Sequence record: LC765218.1 | Direction: 5' to 3' (one strand) | Length of the DNA stretch: 64,000 bases | Shown here: positions 5,236 to 31,976 of the stretch, piece by piece | Layout of the letters: each line of letters starts with the position of its first letter | Numbering within the stretch: position 1 is the first letter of the stretch | Translations under genes and position numbers: made by a program | Notes under the pieces: generated by a model | Told to the model about the DNA's origin: nothing | Seen by the model: the letters and a program-made list of their open reading frames with translations, nothing else | Database searches by the model: none

Positions 5236-5871
5236 ATGAGCAACATCCCTTTCTACTGGACTGTAAAAACAACCGGTTTAACCGAATCCGAATTAATCAA
5301 CACCGTACTTCGTCTTCATGAAGAAGTTGACAGTGTAAACGATACTATCATCGATGGTACTCTAGTAGACCTCGATGTATTGTTAGAAGTTAAAGGACAA
5401 GATGATCTAGTTGATGATGCTATCATTGATTGGATCCGTGATAACTATAAAGCAGGCGATAACATCGTTCTGAAAGTAAAAACTAATCGATTTGTATTTG
5501 GTTGGTTTGCACAAGGTATTGTTGATATTGGAGCAATTCTCCAGAAATATGAACAAGTCCCTGACATGCCAATGGTATTCGATACCTTTAAGCTGAAAGA
5601 TTACAATAAAGAGAAACCCCGTAAGAAAGGTTTCTTTGAACAGTTTAAAGAAAGTATAAATCCGTTGGTTGAATTAGCATATCAGAATAAAGGCTCTATT
5701 GCTGGAATTGCACTCGTTGCAGGTAGTGTACTCTTTGCAAAAAAGTTACAAGACGATCTGGTCAAAACCACAGAAGAAACCGTCCGTAAGACAATGCAAG
5801 AATTTGAACCACCAATCGTCGAAATCCATATCGATGAGTATGGTACATTTGAAGACGTTATTGTTGATTAA
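5236..5871 (+). CDS. hypothetical protein with a possible C-terminal membrane segment
   Basis: 211 aa; GSIAGIALVAGSVLFAKK near the C-terminus; AGGT RBS. Confidence 0.75.
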   Translation: MSNIPFYWTVKTTGLTESELINTVLRLHEEVDSVNDTIIDGTLVDLDVLLEVKGQDDLVDDAIIDWIRDNYKAGDNIVLKVKTNRFVFGWFAQGIVDIGAILQKYEQVPDMPMVFDTFKLKDYNKEKPRKKGFFEQFKESINPLVELAYQNKGSIAGIALVAGSVLFAKKLQDDLVKTTEETVRKTMQEFEPPIVEIHIDEYGTFEDVIVD

Positions 5872-9969: not shown

Positions 9970-10803
9970 TTATCGCATGTAAGCAGGTACACGAATCGGC
10001 TTCTTACGCGACCAACCTAGTTGTTGAATTAGATCAGTAACGTCTAGATTAGGATCAGATTCCATACCGATATTAGCACGCTTCTGTGCTTCATCCTGCA
10101 TCTTCCAAAGGGTAGCAGGTGTGATGATAACTTCGGTATCGGAGAAACTTTCCAAAGCAGGGGAGGTATATTTGTTAGCAATATAGATACCGCCCTCACC
10201 GACGAAGTCCCAGGTGGAAATTTCCCGTGTATACTTAATACCACGCATTACGTCGTCCTGTGTGATAGAACGAACGGAACAATAGGTATTGATACTTGGG
10301 TTATCCAAAGACTCTTTAAAAATGTGACCAAACGGACCGTAAGGTTTAACCTCACCGACGACCATTTTAACAGTCTTACCATTTTCATTCTTACCGGGAA
10401 CAATAGTCAATGCACGGATATGTGCACAAACCCGGTTATCGTCGATCATACGAATACGTTGCAGGTATTGACGATCATCCATCGGTTGACGAACAACACG
10501 ACCATCGATCATCAGGTCTGTAAACGGTTCAGGGTGTTTGAACTCCATGAAGAGAACACCTTTCTTAAGGCGACGCATCAGGGAAGAGTTCGGATCAAAC
10601 ATCGCAACGCCACTGGCTTCGTCATAGAACATACCAGCAGAGTTATGTGTACCATAGGCACCCAGAACTACAGTGTAATAACCGTCCGCATTCGGCGCAA
10701 GAATTCCTTTTTTGTCCGTACCCGCTAACATAGTGCAGCCGATACGTACTTGATTCTGCGGAGAATTTTGGACACCAAAAGAAGATTGTGCCAAAGGATG
10801 CAT
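9970..10803 (-). CDS. prohead (head maturation) protease, phiKZ gp175/SPN3US gp245-like
   Basis: Motifs EFKHP (catalytic His) and SVRS (catalytic Ser), TWDFV.EGG, C-terminal ALES putative autocleavage site; syntenic with vRNAP genes. Confidence 0.85.
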   Translation of the reverse strand: MHPLAQSSFGVQNSPQNQVRIGCTMLAGTDKKGILAPNADGYYTVVLGAYGTHNSAGMFYDEASGVAMFDPNSSLMRRLKKGVLFMEFKHPEPFTDLMIDGRVVRQPMDDRQYLQRIRMIDDNRVCAHIRALTIVPGKNENGKTVKMVVGEVKPYGPFGHIFKESLDNPSINTYCSVRSITQDDVMRGIKYTREISTWDFVGEGGIYIANKYTSPALESFSDTEVIITPATLWKMQDEAQKRANIGMESDPNLDVTDLIQQLGWSRKKPIRVPAYMR

Positions 10804-11610: not shown

Positions 11611-13317
11611 TTATGCTTGTTCTTCTTCTTCAGTTTCAGACTCAGTTTCTTCTTCACTGGCTTCTTCCTGCTCTTCTTCGACTTCTTCAGTCTCAGATTC
11701 AGTAGGAGTTTCATCAGCGTAAGGATCTTCTTCGTCTTCTACCTCCGGAGTTTCAGCCAGGGGACCTTCACCTTCTACTGCATCACCGACAGCATCGGCA
11801 ACTTCTTCACTAGTTGGTTCAGTGATTTCCTCTGGCACTTCTTCTGGTTCAGGAAGAGTTGCATTCGGATCAACATCAGGATTGAATGTTTCTACTTTGA
11901 TCTGCTGTGCTTGGAAAATAGCAATCAGCGAAATCAGAGCTTGAGTATTCAATTCACGTAGTTCTGCACCGGGGAAGTTTTGGCCATATTCATCGATAGT
12001 ATCGAGATACAGCTTATACATCGGTTCGATGTAGTAAGTACGGCAGATAAGATTACTGAATACGCAGTATGGATTATCCAGATCTTCGCGCCGAACGAAA
12101 CGCATGGCGGTAGCCAGTAGTTCACGTACGTTACCGATATTCATTTCACGTAAAGGACCTTCACCACAGTGTGCGAGGAAGGTATCAATAACGTCCTGCC
12201 GACGACGGCTCTCAGCGTAGTCGAGTGCCGCTTGTTTGATTAGCGGATATGTAGCGGTCCAGCGTTTGATGTAATGATCAGCACGTGCGTCAATGCCCTG
12301 TGCATGTACGACATTACCGCCATCAATAGCTGCACCAAGCAGAGCTTCAACAGAACCACCTTTAACGAGCCAGCTCTCAGCAACGTCACCGTTAAGAGTA
12401 ACAAGTACACGACGGTTTTCAACTGGGCGATGAGCTTCATAACGAAGTACAAGAGTATTAGACTCTCGCATTTCAAGACGATTCTCATACGCACGGATGA
12501 TGTAGAAACCAAGCATCTCATGGAGTAGACGAACCGTTTGTTCCCATTCTTCCGATGTTACGGATTCACCAGGTACTTCTTGTGGGTTCTCGATGTAATG
12601 ACCACAGATGAAATAAGCTAGAGTCAGTTCATCAAGATTAAACGGGAAAGCATTAGGATTGATAAAGCTCAGGTTAGAAACAGTCAAACCACGTGCAGTA
12701 CCAAATAGTTCACTCCAAACGTTTTCTACCCGTTGTGCCGGAATCTTAAGAGCCCATTCGGTAACTTGCTCTTGATCCAGGTGCGGGTTATTGATGGATA
12801 CCATCTCGATGATGGTAGCAGCATCAACCGGGCGAAGCATAAAGGTGCGATATTCCGGTAGAGGACGCACTTTAGCATAGCGAGTTTGGATGTGGTTAAC
12901 TAGACGAGGATCGTTATGAATCGGGTCGTAGTTGAAAGTGCTGACATCGCAATCCGCTTGAGAACTTACGTTCTGACGGGAGGCATAGTCAGTGGCCATT
13001 GCTTTAATAGCCGGAATGATAACGTTTTGAGTATTGAATTGAATCTTGGCAATAGCGGTATGCATATTGCTGATGATCGCTTCACGTTCTTCATTAACGT
13101 TCTCGGGTGCTTCAACGTTACTTTCGACAAAATGAGCTTCAACGGAAGCAGCCAGTTCATCGGACATTGCAACTTTATTACCTTCGGTTTCACAGTTGAA
13201 ACCGTCAGCATATACAGCTAGAGGGAACTCGGGGTTCGGAATTGTCAGAACACGTTCCTGTTCAGTGAATGCTTGAGCTGCATCGCGAACAGCGTCCAGA
13301 GTTTCGGGATTAAACAT
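11611..13317 (-). CDS. virion head/ejection protein (phiKZ gp177/SPN3US gp243-like) with Glu-rich tail
   Basis: 568 aa; synteny; very acidic C-terminal ~80 aa; S/A-x-E motifs at the N-terminus. Confidence 0.65.
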   Translation of the reverse strand: MFNPETLDAVRDAAQAFTEQERVLTIPNPEFPLAVYADGFNCETEGNKVAMSDELAASVEAHFVESNVEAPENVNEEREAIISNMHTAIAKIQFNTQNVIIPAIKAMATDYASRQNVSSQADCDVSTFNYDPIHNDPRLVNHIQTRYAKVRPLPEYRTFMLRPVDAATIIEMVSINNPHLDQEQVTEWALKIPAQRVENVWSELFGTARGLTVSNLSFINPNAFPFNLDELTLAYFICGHYIENPQEVPGESVTSEEWEQTVRLLHEMLGFYIIRAYENRLEMRESNTLVLRYEAHRPVENRRVLVTLNGDVAESWLVKGGSVEALLGAAIDGGNVVHAQGIDARADHYIKRWTATYPLIKQAALDYAESRRRQDVIDTFLAHCGEGPLREMNIGNVRELLATAMRFVRREDLDNPYCVFSNLICRTYYIEPMYKLYLDTIDEYGQNFPGAELRELNTQALISLIAIFQAQQIKVETFNPDVDPNATLPEPEEVPEEITEPTSEEVADAVGDAVEGEGPLAETPEVEDEEDPYADETPTESETEEVEEEQEEASEEETESETEEEEQA

Positions 13318-19524: not shown

Positions 19525-19591
19525 TTCAAATTTCCTCTTAGGGGTTACAAAAAGCTAAACGATATGATTGTTTATATCGATGGAGTTGACC

Positions 19592-22500
19592 ATGGCTACA
19601 AAAAAGACCAAGCTGCCAAAACCTGCTGGGATGAATGCCCAGAACAGAATTGGTGTACTTGACCTTAATGAGCTGGACGACCTGTTTGATGATGTCGGTG
19701 AAACCACCAAACCTGGTGATCCAGTAACCGATTTCAAATCTGGTCTGAAAGAGGGCTTCCTCGGTGGATTGAAAACCAAAGACATCGTAAGGAATTTCTT
19801 ACGAAGCGCAGCGCCTGATGGTTTCGCGCGTCTTTTTGGTGCCTATGATGATGTAATGGCTTCGGTAACCGATATCAAAGATACGGTCGAAAGAGTCAAT
19901 GCATCCGACCTAGATTACCTTGGTCGTAAAGCACAGGATTATCTACCCCAGTTAAAAGATCGCATTCCAAATGCCTTATACGAAAATATCTCTGATACGC
20001 TCACCAGAAAGGTTGAACAATATCAGTACGAAGTGGATTCCCAAAGGGACCAAATCGCTATTCGTCGTCGTCGGCAAGAAAATGATGATGCAAATGTAAT
20101 TAAAGCTGCTCTCGATCAGAATACGCTGGTAAGCAGAGAAAACTTCCAACGTAGTGAACAGGGTGCAGTTGCCCGCGCTGCCGTTGAAAGAGCAGAACGT
20201 GGAATTCGTGATAAAGTAAGTGCTGGACGCTTTGACTTTATGTCCCGTTCGATGGGGATGGCTGTAGATAGTCTAACTCGTCTTGTAGGATATAACGAAC
20301 AAGTTAATTATGGAATTCAACGTAAAGGCCTTGAACTTCAGTTCCGTACCTACATGGGTATTAGGGATCTTGTTAAAGTACAAGAAGCTAATCTTGAATT
20401 GCAGAATAAGGCTTATGAAGCATTAGTTCGTAATACCGGCTTACCAGACTACAAGAAAGGCAATGTTGGCGATCTAACCAGTTTTGGTTCAGGTCGCGGC
20501 CGGGGCAACATGCTCGGACGCCTAGCTGGCGGAGCTGCACAGGGCCTTCATGGCTTCTTGGGTAGTTATGGTAACAAAGTAAACGAACGTGTTGCCAGCG
20601 GCCTGGGCGGACGTCTATCGGAGATCGTAGCCGGTCTACGCATGGGCGATATGGCTGGTTCATCCGTTTGGGATAATCGCTATAAGTTCGCTGGTCAAAT
20701 CGCAGGTGAATACGGTGCCGATATCCTTAAGTCGTCTATTGTTCCATGGGCAGGTCGTAAAGTTCGTCCGACTATGGAAAAACTATCCAACCGTTTTGGT
20801 GGACGCCATCATCAGGTAGGGTATGCCCTAGACAACGTTCCAGCATATCTACAAGAGTTCGTTAATAACTACCAAAACACTTATGGTTTCCGTGGCGTTA
20901 TCCGTGATGCTATTATGCCATTCGTTCCTCAGTACCACATGAACGATCGTTTGGAAAACGGAAACTATCAAACAATTGATCAAGGCACGGCCTTTAACCA
21001 ATTGACGCAGCGTAGTATCGTTGAAGTCATCCCAGGTTACCTGTCTCGCCAGCTTCAAGAATTGCGAATGATTCGCACTGGTCGTGATGATATCGAGCGT
21101 GAAGTATTCGATATTACAACTGGTCGATTCGAAGTTCAATCGCTGTCGGATGATCGTCTTCAGAAGAAGATTATTCCAGCAGCAGCAATTCGAAGTGCGA
21201 GTGGTGCCATTAATGACACATTGAACTTGATGGATGAAGAGGGTAAACTTTCTCCAGCTGCACGTAAGGCACTTGGTGAACGTATGCTTCGCGATGCATC
21301 TACAAACCGTAGATTTGATCCAGAAGCTTACCTTAAATCCGGCGGTTATATGGATGGCTTAGATGCCACCACCACAGATGAAATTCAAAGGTTCTTCAAG
21401 AGTAAGTTCCAGTACGACGATAAAGGTAAAATGGCGGATAACGCTGATAACCATCGTCTACGTGATGAATACTCGCGTGCCTTCCTCGATATTCGTTCTG
21501 TAAGTCGTGACCCAGTTAAAGAAGTACATCGTCTAATTAATGCCGGTCAAACCGAGCCTCTTCGGATGCTTGGCATTATCATTACTGAACAAGGTCAAGA
21601 TAGAATAAACTATAACCGTATTTGGGAAATCATGCGCTCCGGCGTGACTGATACAAACCCATGGGTTAATGGTGACTATCAACCTGAAGCTTCTGGTGAT
21701 ATGAATGATAAGAACTTCTTTGGTCCTGCTTACCCAGGTGCAGCTAAAGCCAATGCGCTTAATGCAATGCACCGCTTCCGGAATAAGCATGCTCCACAGG
21801 AAGATCGAATCAAGAAAGAACTATCTCGCTACAGCCGTATTGCACAGGGGAAATTCCAGTACCTGAACAATAAGCACGGCGCCGGTATACATGACTTTGC
21901 TAACAACATGCGTAATGGTCAATTTGGTCCTTACGTTGCTGGTCTGCAAGGAGCTTGGAATGATGCGAGTGTAATGGGTCAAGATCTCTATTCTAAGACA
22001 CGTGCTAAGTTTGGAGAACACATGGATCAGTTCCAGAATGATCCAACCCAATATGCAATCGGTCAGAAAGATAAGATCATTGATGTGTTCACGAAGTTTA
22101 ATCCAAATGAACCCATCATTAAAGGTATTGATTTTGTTCAAGGTAACCTTGTTGACTTTAATACTAAAAAGATTATCGAATCTGTACACGACATTACCGG
22201 TAAGGTTGTTTCTACAACTGGCATGACGGTTCTAACAGCATCTGAAGTTGCCCAGGGTCTGTTTGATAAGAAAGGAATGCGTCTTGAATTACCTGCCTTC
22301 ATGAGCAATGCAGCGGACAAAATCCGCGGTGCTCTAATGGGTGGACAAACTCCTCCTGCTCAACAGTTTGCTGAAGGTGAAAACGCACAGCAAAAACAAG
22401 CAGCTGAAGATGATAAGCATGACTGGTATTTGGATGGTGAGCAAGAACCTACTATCTCTGCTCGTGGTCTAAAGAACGGTGAATACTTCAACGCAGATGG

Positions 22501-25500
22501 TGACCAGATTAATTCGATGCAAGACATCAAAGGTGATGTACTTGATAAGAATGGATCTATCATTGCAACTGCTAAGGAACTAGCTTCTGGTCTATGGTCG
22601 CGTGCTACTCGTAAACGTTGGCGTCTTACTAAGACAGGTCGGCGTCTAGCAAATGTAGCGGGTTGGGGTGCCAAGTTCATGGCAACGAATACATCTACCT
22701 TAGCGTGGAACGCACTGAAGTTTGGTGCTAAGACAGCGATCGGTATGGGTTCGGCCCTATTCAACTTCGCGATTGAAACTCAGAATGCTTATTTACCTGG
22801 TGATGATGTACCTGTACTCGAACGAAGACTAGTTAATGCTGGTAAGTACTTCGATGATAAAGGTCGCGTAATTGAAAACTTTGGCGATGTGTATGGCACG
22901 ATCTTTAACGAGAGAGGCGAACCTGTAATAGAACCATCTCTGTATAAAGACCTTAAGAACTACGACGGTACCAAACATATATTAGCTAAGAATAAAGGTA
23001 TCATCCGTAAGACTGTATGGCGTGGTATTCGCGCTGCTCGTTCGAAGTATATCGATGCTTCCATGAAGTACATGGGTTGGGCATTGAAGAAGACGGGTAA
23101 GTTCTATGGTGGTGCAGCTAAGAAAGTGTTTGGTGGTTTCGCTAAAGCGGGTGGTAACGTTCTTGGACGTATCTTTGAACGAGTACCATACGAAGACTTC
23201 GAAACAACTGATCAAGTACTATTGGGTCGCATTCTTGAAACTCTTCAAGCACAAGTTCCAGAAAAGCTCCGAGCTGGTAGTTGGCAGGATAAAGCAGAAA
23301 AGGCCAAAGAAGGCGCTGCTGGCTTGATGGATAAATTGAAGGGGAAAGGAGATGGGGATACTGATAAAGCTGAAAATAAAGTCCTGAAGGGGTTATCCGA
23401 TGGACTGAAAGGTATCTTCAGTAAACTTACCGGTACCGAAGGTGAAGAAGGCTCTGGTGCGTTCGACGTGCTTATGGGCGGTGGTATGAAAGGTGGCGCT
23501 AAAGGTCGTTTAATGGGCCTTGCTAAACGCGCAGTTCCTTGGCTCCTTGGAGGTACCGCTGCTGCTGTAGGTACAGGCGCCATGGCGTATGGTTATAGTA
23601 AAGATGGAATGGATGCAAAGCAGACAGGTATCCTGACTGCGATGAGTCTTAATTCACTTGGACAATTAACTGCACGTTATATCCTGAAACCTATCTTTGG
23701 TCAAATGAATGATCAGAGGGCAGAGTTCCGTCGTCTTCGGATGCTGCAATACGGTATCACTGATCATGATCAGCAACAGAAAGTCTCTGCGCTTGAAGAT
23801 GCTTTTGATCGCGTAACTGAACGGACAGAAGAACCTGACTTTAATATCAGTGGAGTTGGTGGTAAGGCTATTCTTGACATTCTTGGCATTGACGTTAAGA
23901 ATGAAGTCCAAGTAATGCGGATGTCTCGCTGGTTGGAAATGCGTTTCCGTCCTGTCTTCCTGACTTGGGTTAAGGCATTAGCTAAACTCAAGAAGAATGA
24001 AGTTAAACTCGTTGATATCGATAGTAAGTTCCCACAAGAACTGAAAGGACCATTAGTTAAAGCTGTTAAGATTTCTGTATCTGGTGATACACCGATGCAG
24101 TATCGTGTCGATCCATTCTCTGAAGAAGGTGAATTGGAAGATACCATCCCAGCAGCCGATCAACTATGGAAAGCTCTATACGTTCGCTATAAAGCGGGTG
24201 AGAAGAAAGAAGATGCTGTACCGGCTACAGCGGCTAATACCGAAGTAGCTACTAAAGCTCAGGATATCGCCAAGAAAGCGGCAGATACTGCAACTGGTAA
24301 AACTACACCGAGTCCAATGGATCCTACTAAATCAGCAATGCCTTTGGCTGCTGCTAAGAAAGCTTTCCCTGGTCTAGGTGGTTCAACTGGTGCACCCATA
24401 GTCGCAACCTCGGCAGCTACCACTAAACTAACTGCACTCCAATCCATCCGGATGCGTGCTTACGGTTTAGAAGTACTGAGTTTCTACAATGTCTATCCTC
24501 TTCTAAATGCTGAGGCAATGGTATTTGATGGTCTATCTATTCAGGGTGGTATTCCTGAATTCCGTGGTGACCTAGAATCTATCATGCAAGAAACAGCACC
24601 GCTGTTTGGTAAGGATATCGTTGGTAGTGACGAAGATCGTTCGGCTTACTACGATTGGTTCGTTGGTCGATTCATGCCTGTTGCTCGTGCTTACTACGGA
24701 GCAATGCGTAGTTCGACTCAAGGAACAACCATTGCGAACATGGAATCTAAACTTAAACCCAGCGATGCCGTTATCGTGGGTAATGCTGTACTGGGCGTCA
24801 CTGATTTTGATGGCTCTAGCGTATGGCAGGTTGATTCCATTTTCCCAATTAAGGGAAGTAAAGACGATCTCAAGAAAATGGCTGAAGCTGATTTGGAACA
24901 ACTGAAGAAAGATGCAAGCAAAGACATCATGTCTACGCCGACTCAATCTGCTGGTGACCAAGCAGCTGGAACACAAAGTGCAGCCGCAGGTGGCAGCTTT
25001 GCCGAGAGGGCAATGGCTTCTATCTCGAATACTTGGGAGTCTACTAAAGAAACAGTGAGTAATGCATGGAATAATACCAAGGCAGCTGGCGCTAAAGCAA
25101 TGGACTACATGTCCGACGCTACAGCGACTGCGCAATACAAGCTTGGTATGGCTGGTGAGGTATCTGCAACAGGTCGTACATACGGAACTCTGACGAAGGG
25201 TAACGGTGGCGCTTGGGAACAGATTCCATATCCGAAAGCTAACAAGTCTCGTCAAGCTGCTGCTGAAACATTCCAAGCAGTTGCTGCGATGGTCGGTATT
25301 CCTGTAGAACTGCTGTTCATCTTTGCATCACTTGAGTCTGGTTTTGATTATACTGTCAAAGCTAAGACATCGTCTGCAACCGGATGGTTCCAGTTTATCA
25401 ATAGTACCTGGGACGCAATGTTGGCGAAACATGGCTCCAAGTTCGGTATACCTCCAGACGACGCCCAGCGTAGTTTACGTGTTGATCCACGTATCAACGC

Positions 25501-26362
25501 CTTAATGGGTGCATGCTTCCTTAAAGATAACTACACTTACCTCAAAGATGCATTAGGTCGTGATCCTACGGACGTTGACCTATATATCGCACACTTCATG
25601 GGTCCAGGTGGTGCTCGTAAGTTCTTGACTCGTAATCAGGATACTATCGGCGCATCTGTTTTCCCAGAAGCCGCATCTGCTAACCGACCTATCTTCTACA
25701 AGAAAGGTGGACAACCCCGTACACTCGGGGAAATCTATCAAATGTTCGAAGAGAAGATCGCGAAGCATCGCGGTGGGGCTGAAGGTAGCTCTGTAGCTAC
25801 ACAGGAAGCTGGTAAGACAATGACCACTGATGAGGCAACAGAAGAACAAGCTAAGGCTAATGCCAAAACATCTGCTGCTGAACTATGGAATACTGATGAT
25901 AGTAACAATGCAGGCAATGCAGCTGTTGCTCGCGAAGAAGCTTACAGTGCCACTGGTACTGCTGCCCAAACGCCGGTACTTCCAGGTATTACCCCAATGA
26001 ACCCTGTGGGTGGGACAACTACTAGCGGTGCTAATCCATCTGCTGATAGTGGCGGTAATGTGGTCCAAGCTCAACAAGAAGCAGCTCTTCAAGCAGCACA
26101 GCAGTATAATTCGACTCGTCAAGCTGAAGTACGTCGTAATAACGAGAAGGCTCAACAGATCGATGATATCCAAGCTGAGCAGCTTAAGACGTTAATTGAG
26201 ATGCGTGATCATCTCAAGCGTTTGGTACAATTGAACGAACAAAAGGACAGTGGTACCAAAGAAGCTTCGAAAACCCAAGCCGGAGGAAATAATAGTATGA
26301 CCTCCACGTTAATGAGATCGACCTCGGCTCAAAATCGACCGTCGCCGCTCACGCTAACTTAA
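19592..26362 (+). CDS. giant tail/ejection protein with lytic transglycosylase domain (phiKZ gp181-like)
   Basis: About 2256 aa from ATG 19592 (GGAG RBS); SLT motifs [32 protein letters not shown] at about 25310-25620. Confidence 0.9.
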
Positions 26363-26417: not shown

Positions 26418-28394
26418 ATGGCAACAGATGTTAAGCCTATTTGGTTGCGCCAAGCTTTCTTATTGCCTATTAATGACAATAAGAACTCGTATGGTTCTCA
26501 GACCAAACGGCGTTATGCTAACTCGGCTGCTTTCAAATTTACAAATACGTCGCTGGGTGGTAGTTTTGCTATCAACCCTCTCCCACAATACACACGCTAT
26601 GCTGATATTCGCCAGCCTGGCCGAGGCCGCACCTACGAAGATCGTTTCTTAGGTATGGGTCGTTACTATTCAGAAGCACACGACGATACTAAACAAGAAG
26701 TCCATATGTCGTTTGGTGTTCCACGTTATTCAAGCTGGACCTCGTTCTTTACGAACTTCTATGATCGTTCGGCGGCGGGCCTAGCTAATACTGGTGTTAC
26801 ATCTGACCTTTGGTATAACTTAGGTAACGTGACTGGTTATTTCATCACTCTACCGCTACAACCATTTATTCTTGGGGTAACTGGCGTATCTCGTGTTATT
26901 AGTTTCTTGACTAAATCACAACCATCGAAGTGGTTCTATTTTAAACCGACTATGCATGCATACTGGTCGTCTGTGAATACGCTAGCTAACGAGTTCGCTA
27001 TCGCTATGGGCATGGTCCCGCGTATTCTCGATGATTCTCAACGTCCTCTAGAAGACCCAGGCCATCGAGTAGGATTAGATGATGTTAAACGTATGCACGA
27101 AATCTTCCCAGGTTTCTTCCGCCCAGATGGCGGCGTCGATGTAATGTCTTTGGCTGGACGTACGCAACGTATGTCTGACCAAGCTCAAAAATCAATGCGT
27201 GCAATGGCAGAGAAGGCGCGTACCCTTGCCGAACTTCGGGCTGGTATTGAATCTGAAATGGCCAAAGCTGTAACAGACCCTAAACCAGGCGCTGACGCAC
27301 GTGACTATTTCTTGAAGTATCTGGAAGCTGATAAGAAACCATCCGAAAAGAATGGTGTTATTGATACCGAGAGTTTTAGCAGTTGGGGTGAATTGAAGAA
27401 CGTATATGACTTCGTTGTAGGCGCACAGCGCGACGGTTCTCAGTTCGTTACATTCCGTGTTGACTATAATGGTGAAGTATCTGAATCCTTTACTAACACT
27501 ACACGAGATGTAGGTGTTGTACAAACACTTAATACGAAGGTAGGGGAAGGTCGAGCTGCATCGTTTGACTTCATGGGTGGTAACATCACGGAAGGCGTTG
27601 GTGCGGTTACAGACATGCTTAAAGGATTTATTTCCGGAGCACTAGACTCTGTTAACTTATCTGGACTTGAGACATTAGCAGGCGCGGCTTTCGTAGATGC
27701 ACCAGAGTACTGGGAATCAGCGATGGCTTCTTTACCATCTGCTTCGTATACTGTTCAATTGATCTCCCCTTATGGAAATAAAATATCCAGGTTCATGAAC
27801 ATATACGTACCACTAGCCATGATTCTCCCAATGGGATTACCAAGGTCAGCTGGTCGAAGTGCTTACACCTCTCCGTTCATCTGTCAAATTTTCCATAAAG
27901 GTCGAGTACAGAGACAACTGGGGATCGTGGATAGCATTCAGATCCGTCGCGGTGTCGGTAACGTTGGTTGGAACGCTGAACACGAAATGCTTGGTTGTGA
28001 AGTAACCTTCAGTGTTAAAGATCTATCTAAGCTAATGCATATCCCACTGAAGGCTGGCTTTGCTAGTCCGAGTTGGTTGGGTACTGCTGGTCGTGCTATT
28101 TCGGCTACAGCCGGTGAAGCCGTTGCAGGTGATGGTGGTATTGCTACTGCGCTAGCTCTTACTGATGGAGCGGTGTGGGATGAACAAAGTCTGTTCCAAG
28201 ATTACGTGTCGACTCTAACGTCACAATCCTGGGCAGATTTCTATTACGCTGGTAAACGTTTGAATCTTAACCTGACTCGTGCAGTTCAAAGCTTCAAGTC
28301 TTGGCGTAGTCCTTCGAACCTAATGTCTTGGGTTCTCGATGGTGAGGTCGCCCGTACGGTCTCTGCCTTCGCTCAAACTTCTGATCGCTTTTAA
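26418..28394 (+). CDS. tail tip/baseplate hub protein (phiKZ gp182-like)
   Basis: 658 aa immediately after the gp181-like gene; size and synteny. Confidence 0.75.
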
Positions 28395-28410
28395 TATAGG
28401 AAACGCAATA

Positions 28411-28881
28411 ATGTCTATCGTTCGCAAAATCGCTCTGAAACTCCTTGGTGTTGAATCCGTACCGGAACTGGCTCGCTCTGAGATCAAAGGTAATGACCTG
28501 GCTCAACTCGCGTCGACTCTTCCGGTAGATACTCTGACCAATCTGCTGGTTGGTAAGTCCGGTGTTCGTAACTTCGCCGAACTGGCTTCTGGTTATCTGG
28601 AAGCTGAACAGTACCGTGGTCAGAACCTGGAAGCTGAGCTTCGTAAACTTGTTCGCAAATATACTGCTGGTGCTCGTATCAATTCTTCCATTGAGAACAT
28701 CGCAGTCAATGCACTGATCGGTGGTGTAGCCGAAGTAGAGAACAGCAAAGAACGTAATATTCTGAAGCGTAAGGCTGCTGCCATGGTCGCTATTCGTGCA
28801 CAGATGCCGGGTATCGCTAAGGCTGATGGTAACTACGCTGTAGAACTGCTTCTGCAAATTGTTAAAGTCCGCTACTCTTAA
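28411..28881 (+). CDS. hypothetical helical protein
   Basis: Start refined to ATG 28411 (AGGA RBS); 156 aa. Confidence 0.75.
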   Translation: MSIVRKIALKLLGVESVPELARSEIKGNDLAQLASTLPVDTLTNLLVGKSGVRNFAELASGYLEAEQYRGQNLEAELRKLVRKYTAGARINSSIENIAVNALIGGVAEVENSKERNILKRKAAAMVAIRAQMPGIAKADGNYAVELLLQIVKVRYS

Positions 28882-28890
28882 GGTGAACTG

Positions 28891-29472
28891 ATGAAAGGTC
28901 TGGACTGGGCTCTTAGTGTAGAGAGCCAAGATGGTGTCGCCCAACCGGTAGATGCTAGTAATGTCGAATCTGAAACTGAGGTTAAAGATCTCGACCAAGG
29001 TAATCTGGATGTGGATAATGCTAATGCTGAATCCCAACCGGACGATGTTAAGGCTAGTACTACGGTAGATATCTCCGTTGAACAACTAGAAGATGGTCAG
29101 GTATCCGGTAGTTCCGGTGGTAAGACTATTGATGCCTATGGTGTCGATGAAATGTCTGGCGCACCAAAACGTATTGTGATCTCTGGTTTCGATGCATCTA
29201 CAAACAAAGCTGCTGAACCGAGTGATAATAAACTCGAACTGGTTATCCTGCTTCAAAACGGAGTAATCCCTGAAGTTGGTATTAACGGGGTAACTGTTGA
29301 AGATCTGCTGACTGCTTCGATCATTGTATTCGAAGGTTTCCAATCGGGTAAGTTTGCCTGTGAAGAAAATGCCAAAGCACTGTTCCATATGAACGCTGCT
29401 CGTGAACTGATTCGTGCTCGATTGGAGCGCCGTCAAGCACAAGGCACTGAAGGTACCTACGAAGGTAACTGA
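28891..29472 (+). CDS. tad1: Tad1-like immune-signal sponge with acidic N-terminal propeptide
   Basis: C-terminal LQNG..GVTVEDLL..FQSGKFACEENAKAL..R...R....EGT matches the recalled Tad1 pattern FQKG..GVIDSDLL..FQAGPFSSRENACAL..R...R....LGT. Confidence 0.8.
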   Translation: MKGLDWALSVESQDGVAQPVDASNVESETEVKDLDQGNLDVDNANAESQPDDVKASTTVDISVEQLEDGQVSGSSGGKTIDAYGVDEMSGAPKRIVISGFDASTNKAAEPSDNKLELVILLQNGVIPEVGINGVTVEDLLTASIIVFEGFQSGKFACEENAKALFHMNAARELIRARLERRQAQGTEGTYEGN

Positions 29473-29479
29473 TATAAAC

Positions 29480-29504
29480 GCCTCCCTTCGGGGAGGCTTT
29501 ATGT
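29480..29504 (+). terminator. terminator
   Basis: GCCTCCC-TTC-GGGAGGC-TTTATGTT. Confidence 0.8.
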
Positions 29505-29527
29505 TCCATTAAAAATAATTTCAAATC

Positions 29528-29535
29528 TATATCAC
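29528..29535 (+). promoter_or_regulatory. early promoter variant TATATCAC
   Basis: One mismatch to TATATTAC; same terminator plus A/T tract context. Confidence 0.6.
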
Positions 29536-29655
29536 AGGTATGCATTAGAGATTAACATCTTGAGGGTATTACCATGTAACAGCTAACAGATTATTCATTT
29601 GTGAAAACGATACCATGAACAACAAGTTAATTCCTTTAACAGAAGGTAATAAAAA

Positions 29656-30150
29656 ATGAAAGAACAGAACATCGACCACAATAAACCTTATACTTACGTG
29701 GTCAGTGATACTGAAGGCAATACGCGTGTACATACTACCATGGGTAGCACCCTGAAAGAACAGATCGACCATGCTGTCGGTACGGGTGGTAAAGCCAAGG
29801 TAGAACATATCGAGGAAGGCATCCGCAATATGCCTCATTCGTCCGAGTCTACTCGTCTCCTTCGTGCAACTATTCCAGGTTTCTACAAGATGCTTGAAGG
29901 CATCATGTCCAAAATCGGTAAGGCCCTTGCTGAGCCCGATAACTGGGAAACTGGTAACAATGGTCGACTGGTTTTCCATATCGAGACTCTATTTGGAGCC
30001 GATAAGAAATTCTGGCCGTTGATTACCCAGAGTGTTTACGAACGTCTGCAATACGACGGTTACGTTGGTGTAGATGTGGAGATAATGGAAAAAGAAAATC
30101 AACCGGTCAAGTTGATTACTCGTTTCGGTATTCCGGCGCGTATGACCTAA
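29656..30150 (+). CDS. hypothetical protein
   Basis: 164 aa, AAGGT RBS. Confidence 0.75.
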   Translation: MKEQNIDHNKPYTYVVSDTEGNTRVHTTMGSTLKEQIDHAVGTGGKAKVEHIEEGIRNMPHSSESTRLLRATIPGFYKMLEGIMSKIGKALAEPDNWETGNNGRLVFHIETLFGADKKFWPLITQSVYERLQYDGYVGVDVEIMEKENQPVKLITRFGIPARMT

Positions 30151-30844: not shown

Positions 30845-30908
30845 TCGAATGGGGCTCTACGGAGCCCCTTTCCATCTAATTAATTTTTATGTAAATACAG
30901 GAAACAAG

Positions 30909-31976
30909 ATGACCAAATCTGCTAGCCGTAATTTCATCGTACTGGAAGGCCCCGAGTTCTCCGGTAAATCGACGCTGCATCGTGCTCTTATTGAACGACT
31001 CAAAGCTGATGGTATCGACCACGTGGCTCTTCGTGAACCGGGTGGAACGGAAATGGCTGAAGAGATTCGCACTGTTCTATTGAAACATCGTGAAGAAAAG
31101 ATTGACCCAGTTTCAGATATTTTCCTGCATATGGCATATCGCCGACAGAATATCCAGAATATCGTCAAGCCATCTCTGAATGAAGGTAAATGGGTTGTAT
31201 CTGATCGCTTTGTTTTCTCTACTTGGTGCTTGAACGTAGCTCCTTATCTGGACACCAATCCGAATCTGGCAGATCTGTTCATGGGTGTAATGCCGCATGT
31301 TATCGGTGATGGTGTTCCTGAACCGCTGTGCTTCTATCTGGAAACTCCTGAGGAAGTACGGAAAGAACGTATGGTTAACAGTGGTCGTTCTCTGGATCGT
31401 TATGAAGATGACGAAGTTTACCAAACTCGTGTTAACAACGCATACGCTCAGATTAAGTTTAGTCCTTCGACTAAGGTAATTGACGGCACGGCTCCCATTG
31501 ATGAACAAGTTCAATTCATCATTGAAACTGTTCAAGCCCACGAAGCTCTGCGAGCTAAAGATGAGCTTGAAGAGAAAACCGAGAACAGCGGCCATCTTCC
31601 TCCGGAAACCATCCCTGGTGAAGAACACGATGAAAGCGGTGATGTTGTACAACAATCTTCTGTTGACGAAGAACCTGTTGAACCGGCTGTCTTTGATCTG
31701 GAAGTGGCACTGGAGCAATACGCTGAAACCCAAATTATCAAAGAGGTGATTTTGGGTCGAGAAGAACTCCTGCCGTATTACAAAGACCTGGCCAAGAAGA
31801 TTGTACGTAAGATCTTCGAAAAGACCAATGACGAGACTATCTTCCATCCAGCGCGTGTTGGTGAGTTGAACCGCGAAATCCATTCTCTGTTCCACTTCCA
31901 TGAACGTCTGCAAGACTGGAAAGATCTGATCAACAAAGACGAGCCGGTTGAACCTGAAACCGCTGTAGCAGAATAA
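30909..31976 (+). CDS. tmk: thymidylate kinase with a C-terminal extension
   Basis: P-loop EGPEFSGKS, REPGGT, SDRF; start refined to 30909. Confidence 0.9.
   Translation: MTKSASRNFIVLEGPEFSGKSTLHRALIERLKADGIDHVALREPGGTEMAEEIRTVLLKHREEKIDPVSDIFLHMAYRRQNIQNIVKPSLNEGKWVVSDRFVFSTWCLNVAPYLDTNPNLADLFMGVMPHVIGDGVPEPLCFYLETPEEVRKERMVNSGRSLDRYEDDEVYQTRVNNAYAQIKFSPSTKVIDGTAPIDEQVQFIIETVQAHEALRAKDELEEKTENSGHLPPETIPGEEHDESGDVVQQSSVDEEPVEPAVFDLEVALEQYAETQIIKEVILGREELLPYYKDLAKKIVRKIFEKTNDETIFHPARVGELNREIHSLFHFHERLQDWKDLINKDEPVEPETAVAE

Follow-up and report, generated by a model that had tools for sequence, protein, structure and literature searches.

The gene RVBP21_0900 of the Pseudomonas aeruginosa phage BRkr (LC765218.1, 306 kb) is the ortholog of phiKZ gp184, a Tad1 protein, and probably encodes a sponge precursor that is packaged into the phage head, cleaved, injected into the host and able to bind Thoeris and CBASS signals. 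The gene lies on the plus strand at positions 28891-29472 of the 64,000-nucleotide stretch that was analysed (the window). It was called as an open reading frame with an ATG start, encoding 193 amino acids plus a stop codon, and is labelled 'hypothetical protein' in the BRkr record and in the listed records of its close relatives. The membership of the Tad1 family and the orthology to gp184 are both close to certain. The evidence from BRkr itself comprises homology, conserved residues, the predicted fold, the order of the genes, and the presence of a head protease and of its motif. The initial annotation, made from the sequence alone, had proposed a Tad1-like sponge with a protease-cut propeptide and virion delivery. 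This proposal matches the published results on phiKZ gp184, but it is not novel, as a protease-processed, packaged and injected Tad1 is a concept already published for that protein. For BRkr, we infer packaging, cleavage, injection and ligand binding from the orthologs and the literature.

Tad1 family membership and orthology with phiKZ gp184

A phmmer search of the PDB sequences returned phiKZ gp184 (8y6v chain I, 230 aa) as the best match of the BRkr protein, with E = 8e-36 over residues 75-193. Solved Tad1 chains were matched over residues 119-191, with E = 8.2e-8 for CmTad1 (8kbb) and E = 0.012-0.016 for CbTad1 (7uav, 8kbe, 8kbg and 8kbh), and this range of 8e-8 to 0.016 bears out the Tad1 likeness noticed in the initial annotation. 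The C-terminal residues on which that likeness had been based are present in the translation as they were quoted. The Pfam domain PF24729, named the Acb2/Tad1 hairpin domain in a paper, is carried by nearly all of the 46 database homologs. From this domain, the sequence matches and the predicted fold, the Tad1-like domain was assigned to residues 65-193 (29083-29469, plus strand).

The AlphaFold2 model of the BRkr protein, built on 27 homologs, showed a confident predicted fold across approximately residues 71-190, with four strands (71-121) followed by helices at 136-152 and 158-184. This part of the protein is predicted to fold as Tad1. A Foldseek search of the PDB with the predicted structure, one of the checks put forward with the original claim, gave Tad1 structures for all of the top 20 matches (probability 1.0, with E = 2e-6 to 3e-5 and a target TM of 0.63-0.74), and the first match beyond these 20 had E = 0.29. 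The matching structures in BFVD carry the name 'Acb2/Tad1 hairpin domain'. Three PHROGs families were matched, all of 'unknown function'. PADLOC gave no match; as it is a library of defence systems, none is expected for a counter-defence protein.

The classical stand-alone Tad1 proteins are CbTad1 from a Clostridium botulinum prophage (7UAV/7UAW/8SMD), CmTad1 (8KBB-8KBD) and Tad1 of the Bacillus phage SBSphiJ7. The binding of gcADPR and the inhibition of Thoeris have been reported for members of the family. The BRkr protein shares the sheet-plus-two-helices fold with these proteins, which, in contrast, lack an N-terminal propeptide; packaging is not known for any of them. The residues that form the hexamer interface of CmTad1, a trimer of dimers, are not conserved, most of their equivalents being different. 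Acb2 is likewise a phage sponge for immune nucleotides and has the Pfam 'Acb2/Tad1 hairpin' element in common with Tad1. It belongs, however, to a different overall family, binds cyclic trinucleotides and has not been reported as packaged in virions. No Acb2 structure was present among the PDB matches of the BRkr protein by either phmmer or Foldseek.

Identity to phiKZ-type gp184 was 54% over residues 77-193 (BLASTP), and the gene order gp181-182-183-184 is common to BRkr and the phiKZ-type phages. In BRkr, this co-oriented run on the plus strand is opened by the gene for a gp181-like giant protein of 2264 aa (19568-26362). The second gene encodes a gp182-like virion protein of 658 aa (26418-28394), and the third, in the position of phiKZ gp183 (28411-28881), a protein of 156 aa with 31% identity to phiKZ-type gp183 (E = 1e-6). 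The Tad1-like gene is the last of the run, as initially described. A Shine-Dalgarno-like AAGGTGA, read directly from the sequence (28880-28886, plus strand), lies 4 nt before its ATG, and part of it falls within the stop codon of the gene before. The run is closed by an intrinsic-terminator-like hairpin of seven base pairs, six of them G-C, followed by a T-rich tail (29480-29497, plus strand), in agreement with the terminator that had been placed at 29480.

Several other features of the neighbourhood were recorded. The protein in the gp183 position has 156 aa in BRkr and 101 aa in the phiKZ-type phages, and the same interval of 201phi2-1 is occupied by two genes (gp278 and gp279). An A+T-rich intergenic stretch of approximately 160 nt (29498-29655) extends from the terminator to the next gene (29656-30150) and is likely the promoter region of the block that this gene opens. 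A thymidylate-kinase-like ORF of 375 aa (30849-31976, plus strand) has a long acidic C-terminal extension; its counterpart in PS119XW is annotated as a thymidylate kinase. An ORF of 263 aa on the opposite strand (28294-29085) was rejected, as it is absent from the BRkr annotation and homologs were found solely for the plus-strand gene. No second copy of the Tad1-like protein was found in the 64-kb window by tblastn, which returned the gene at 28891-29472 alone.

The window matches BRkr at 100% identity, and is 86-99% identical to HHBS36_1, phiHQ, PA1C and PS119XW (genus Pawinskivirus), phiLBG22 and HPP-Temi. By tblastn, the gene was present in 66 Pseudomonas phage records, including those of phiKZ-like phages, PhiPA3, 201phi2-1, Phabio and Noxifer, and more distant Tad1-type genes were present in 74 Bacillus phage records. 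The proteins gp280 of 201phi2-1 and gp217 of PhiPA3 have 53-60% full-length identity to the BRkr protein. Like it, they are comprised of an acidic N-terminus and a Tad1 domain, without the capsid-wedge module of phiKZ gp184 that is described below. Both phages belong to genera other than that of BRkr (Serwervirus for 201phi2-1, and the PhiPA3 lineage), and neither record annotates Tad1. The GenBank note on gp280 reads 'identified using mass spectrometry; similar to phiKZ gp184'. Among the Bacillus Herelleviridae, several stand-alone Tad1-like genes carry the label 'putative structural protein'. Orf166 of Bc431v3 (L005:2366-2746) encodes a stand-alone protein of 126 aa amid recombination and sigma-factor genes; its 'structural' label was considered as evidence of packaging and rejected, since the protein was named by similarity alone.

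Processing signals and the proposed route into the virion

The phiKZ ortholog has been located in the inner vertex-binding complex of the capsid, as a minor capsid protein that undergoes cleavage by gp175, the head protease, at sites verified in earlier work; the modelled part of gp184, described as mainly beta-strand, fills the gap between gp86 and a subunit of the major capsid protein (PMC11297242). It has been validated as an injected protein by proteomics, using tagged virions and translation-blocked cells (PMC10449902). In the preprint of Chan et al. (2025), the gene is named tad1 and is non-essential, the N-terminus of gp184 is wedged in the capsid, and the C-terminus is 'liberated by a head protease' and injected. 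The same account is given in a 2026 review of jumbo phages. In both works, phiKZ Tad1 is described as countering Thoeris and CBASS (Chan et al. 2025; 2026 review), with a citation of Li et al. (2024, Nature 635:719). PhiKZ goes unmentioned in the preprint that Li et al. released in 2023.

In BRkr, residues 1-64 (28891-29082, plus strand) form an acidic region that is predicted to be disordered, with pLDDT <50 across most of residues 1-71, and that we propose to be a propeptide and capsid-targeting part. The first 70 residues contain 11 D and 7 E against 3 K and no R, so that the count of 18 acidic residues against 3 lysines in the initial annotation holds, as do the S-V-E tripeptides at 9-11 and 62-64. 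The window has 90 ORFs of at least 100 aa, and in none of the others are the first 70 residues as acidic as here (net charge -15). The pattern of the N-terminal leader was not found in the other 89. Strongly acidic N-termini, again over 70 residues, were also seen in two further ORFs, at 5236-5871 (plus strand; net -12) and at 11611-13317 (minus strand; net -11), the latter of which (PHROG 3841) adjoins the head protease gene; both may encode propeptide-bearing head proteins. An NCBIfam match to nitrosocyanin on the low-complexity region was discarded as noise, with 23 bits against a cut-off of 143.

The first candidate site for the prohead protease (S/A/G-x-E) is S9-V10-E11 (28915-28923, plus strand), and the second is S62-V63-E64 (29074-29082, plus strand), approximately six residues ahead of the first predicted strand. 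The number of such motifs in the protein was not above chance (6, compared with 5.2 ± 1.9 in shuffled sequences), and the evidence was therefore taken from positional conservation. At the first site, S/G-x-E was aligned in 40 of the 42 long-form homologs. An S/G/A-x-E within approximately 15 residues upstream of the fold was present in all but one of the 42, the exception (P0046) being a marginal match. The tripeptides of phiKZ-type gp184 that align with the two BRkr sites are S-L-E (11-13) and G-H-E (106-108). Conservation of the leader and of the two S/G-x-E sites extends even to lineages at approximately 50% identity, and phiKZ gp184 shares them with BRkr, as well as the acidic N-terminal region. 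The virion-delivery account of gp184 is carried over to BRkr by homology, and these conserved processing signals support doing so.

The window also encodes a head maturation protease of the phiKZ gp175 type (9970-10803, minus strand; PHROG 3014, E = 1e-91), at the position where a protease had initially been noted, and this is the proposed processing enzyme of the Tad1-like precursor. Cleavage after E64 is predicted to release a product of 129 aa and 13.7 kDa. This is near the size of the classical stand-alone Tad1 proteins (123-138 aa), as had been remarked at the outset.

On the proposed mechanism, the Tad1-like gene would be expressed late, alongside the structural genes gp181-183, and the N-terminal region would bring the precursor into the prohead. 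The head maturation protease would cut at S/G-x-E, after E11 and/or E64, and the freed Tad1 domain of 129 aa would be stored inside the filled head. It would then enter the next host cell together with the DNA, and its pocket (F150/N160/R177/R181) would sequester the gcADPR of Thoeris and the cyclic dinucleotides of CBASS before the onset of phage gene expression. Such a scheme is alike in principle to that of T4 IPI*, an anti-defence protein with a short N-terminal capsid-targeting peptide that is cut by the prohead protease after Glu, packaged and co-injected with the DNA. IPI* is unrelated to the BRkr protein in sequence and fold, and its target is a restriction enzyme, which it inhibits through protein-protein contact and not through sequestration of a small-molecule signal.

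The BRkr protein could instead act as a sponge in the cytoplasm only, following new synthesis, with an acidic tail that serves solubility or regulation and is neither cleaved nor involved in packaging. We consider this unlikely, while noting that the classical Tad1 proteins do work following their expression from the phage genome, that the motif count given above is at the level of chance, and that the capsid-wedge module of phiKZ gp184 is missing in BRkr. Against it stand the position of the gene at the end of a run of virion genes, with a spacing like that of translational coupling, the retention of the leader and of both sites across distant lineages, and the presence of the cognate protease in the window. 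Furthermore, the GenBank record states that gp280 of 201phi2-1, also a protein without the wedge module, was identified by mass spectrometry.

The beta-rich module of phiKZ gp184

The BRkr protein is 37 residues shorter than phiKZ gp184. In the phiKZ-type protein (L002:8662-9351), the acidic region is separated from the Tad1 domain by an extra beta-rich module of approximately 45 residues (about 60-108). The module is present in 5 of the 51 relatives, and is absent from BRkr and from the other 46. The representative of the phiKZ cluster, which differs from the deposited gp184 at nine positions, was folded and searched against the PDB. Besides Tad1 structures, it matched 8y6v_I at 97% identity and an rmsd of 1.5 A; the target, the only piece of gp184 that is resolved in the capsid, was 34 residues long. 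A stretch of 34 residues that has exactly one mismatch and is mainly beta-strand fits only within gp184 residues 55-108. The capsid-resolved residues thus most likely lie in the beta module and not in the Tad1 domain, and this placement agrees with the description of a wedged N-terminus and a freed C-terminus (Chan et al. 2025). Since BRkr lacks the module, its protein cannot be held in the head by a wedge contact of the gp184 type, and the BRkr precursor is simpler, comprising the acidic region and the sponge domain.

The same structural data bear on a second alternative, in which the protein is purely a minor capsid component that cements the vertex complex, its Tad1 fold is a relic and no signal is sequestered. 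The modelling of phiKZ gp184 in the vertex-binding complex, between gp86 and the major capsid protein (PMC11297242), would fit such a role. However, the 34 modelled residues of 8y6v were placed at 55-108, outside the Tad1 domain, and the module that holds them is missing from BRkr and from 46/51 relatives. The Goslar vertex complex shows no homolog of gp184, and gp184 itself is non-essential and is reported to be injected (Chan et al. 2025; PMC10449902). The invariance of N160, R177 and R181 in 51/51 relatives is also not expected of a mere spacer, and we regard a solely structural role as very unlikely.

Ligand-site residues and predicted signal range

The residues of the ligand sites were those named in the Li et al. 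preprint, and were placed in the BRkr protein through HMMER alignments to the Tad1 chains. The predicted pocket for gcADPR and cyclic dinucleotides, mapped from CbTad1, spans 29338-29433 (plus strand). It includes F150 (29338-29340; CbTad1 F82), N160 (29368-29370; CbTad1 N92), R177 (29419-29421; CbTad1 R109) and R181 (29431-29433; CbTad1 R113). The first of these is F or Y in 49/51 relatives, and the other three are the N, R and R seen in every relative (51/51 each). The spacing of the four residues (10, 17 and 4) is identical in the BRkr protein and CbTad1.

The equivalents of the two phosphate contacts for cyclic trinucleotides (29362-29385, plus strand) were, in contrast, replaced. The arginine of CbTad1 (R90) and CmTad1 (R88) is E158 in BRkr (29362-29364), with Arg in 0/51 relatives, and the threonine (CbTad1 T97, CmTad1 T95) is F165 (29383-29385), with Thr in 1/51. 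Because both phosphate contacts are replaced, no binding of cyclic trinucleotides is expected, and the BRkr protein, unlike classical Tad1, probably lacks this activity. The contacts are substituted alike in phiKZ gp184. Substitutions at these contacts occur in approximately 6% of Tad1 orthologs (Li et al. preprint); the replaced site thus marks a subgroup and does not exclude membership of the family. Judged from these residues, the BRkr protein would keep the binding of gcADPR and dinucleotides and would have lost that of cA3.

Two residue changes had been singled out in the initial annotation as possible causes of a shift in ligand specificity. The change from REN to EEN is real, but it affects the arginine that binds cyclic trinucleotides and not the gcADPR pocket. 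The loss of a late arginine was located to position 184, which is Q in BRkr, is equivalent to CbTad1 R116 and begins the C-terminal lid; the pocket arginines R177 and R181 are, however, retained.

An indirect observation on phiKZ is consistent with the predicted loss of cA3 binding. A phiKZ mutant that is sensitive to a cA3-NucC CBASS system was rescued when Acb2 was supplied, and this suggests that cA3 is not removed by the gp184 that phiKZ itself encodes. Five metagenomic homologs of 125-148 aa (P0040 and P0042-P0045) have a helix of the gp184 type with Glu at the position of the trinucleotide-binding arginine, and have no acidic N-terminal region. They look intermediate between the stand-alone Tad1 and the packaged form.

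It is highly improbable that the packaged Tad1-fold protein has a ligand outside the known signals of Thoeris and CBASS, such as another nucleotide-derived messenger: lid and loop residues do differ from those in the solved Tad1 structures, at the equivalents of R57, R116 and the loop (I126; Q184, with Q or E in 44/51 relatives), sponge families show a wide and shifting specificity and the dinucleotide spectra vary between Tad1 homologs, but the four residues common to gcADPR and cyclic-dinucleotide binding are retained, and Chan et al. (2025) and the 2026 review have phiKZ Tad1 acting against both systems.

Returning to the packaged sponge with a Thoeris and CBASS ligand range, the form found in BRkr, PA1C, PhiPA3 and 201phi2-1 could represent a minimal 'propeptide plus sponge' cargo without a capsid-anchored piece, within a gp184 clade that as a whole binds only gcADPR and cyclic dinucleotides, having lost the trinucleotide site of classical Tad1 and possibly its hexamer. 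We hold this combined reading tentatively, at somewhat less than even confidence. If true, these phages would depend on other means against CBASS systems that signal through cA3.

With the concept already published for phiKZ gp184, the finding opens no new question. The two refinements made here are modest, and both may already be covered by Li et al. (2024, Nature): one is that the trinucleotide site has been lost across the family, the other that the wedge module is missing from BRkr. The residue comparison predicts a narrower range of ligands, without cyclic trinucleotides, and the comparison with phiKZ gp184 separates the capsid-wedge module from the delivered domain. The analysis gives a function to a 'hypothetical protein' of BRkr, PA1C, PS119XW, phiHQ, HHBS36_1, HPP-Temi, PhiPA3 and 201phi2-1. 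The nucleus-forming jumbo phages of Pseudomonas, several of them being studied as agents for phage therapy, appear to have in common the pre-loaded anti-Thoeris/CBASS sponge known from phiKZ.
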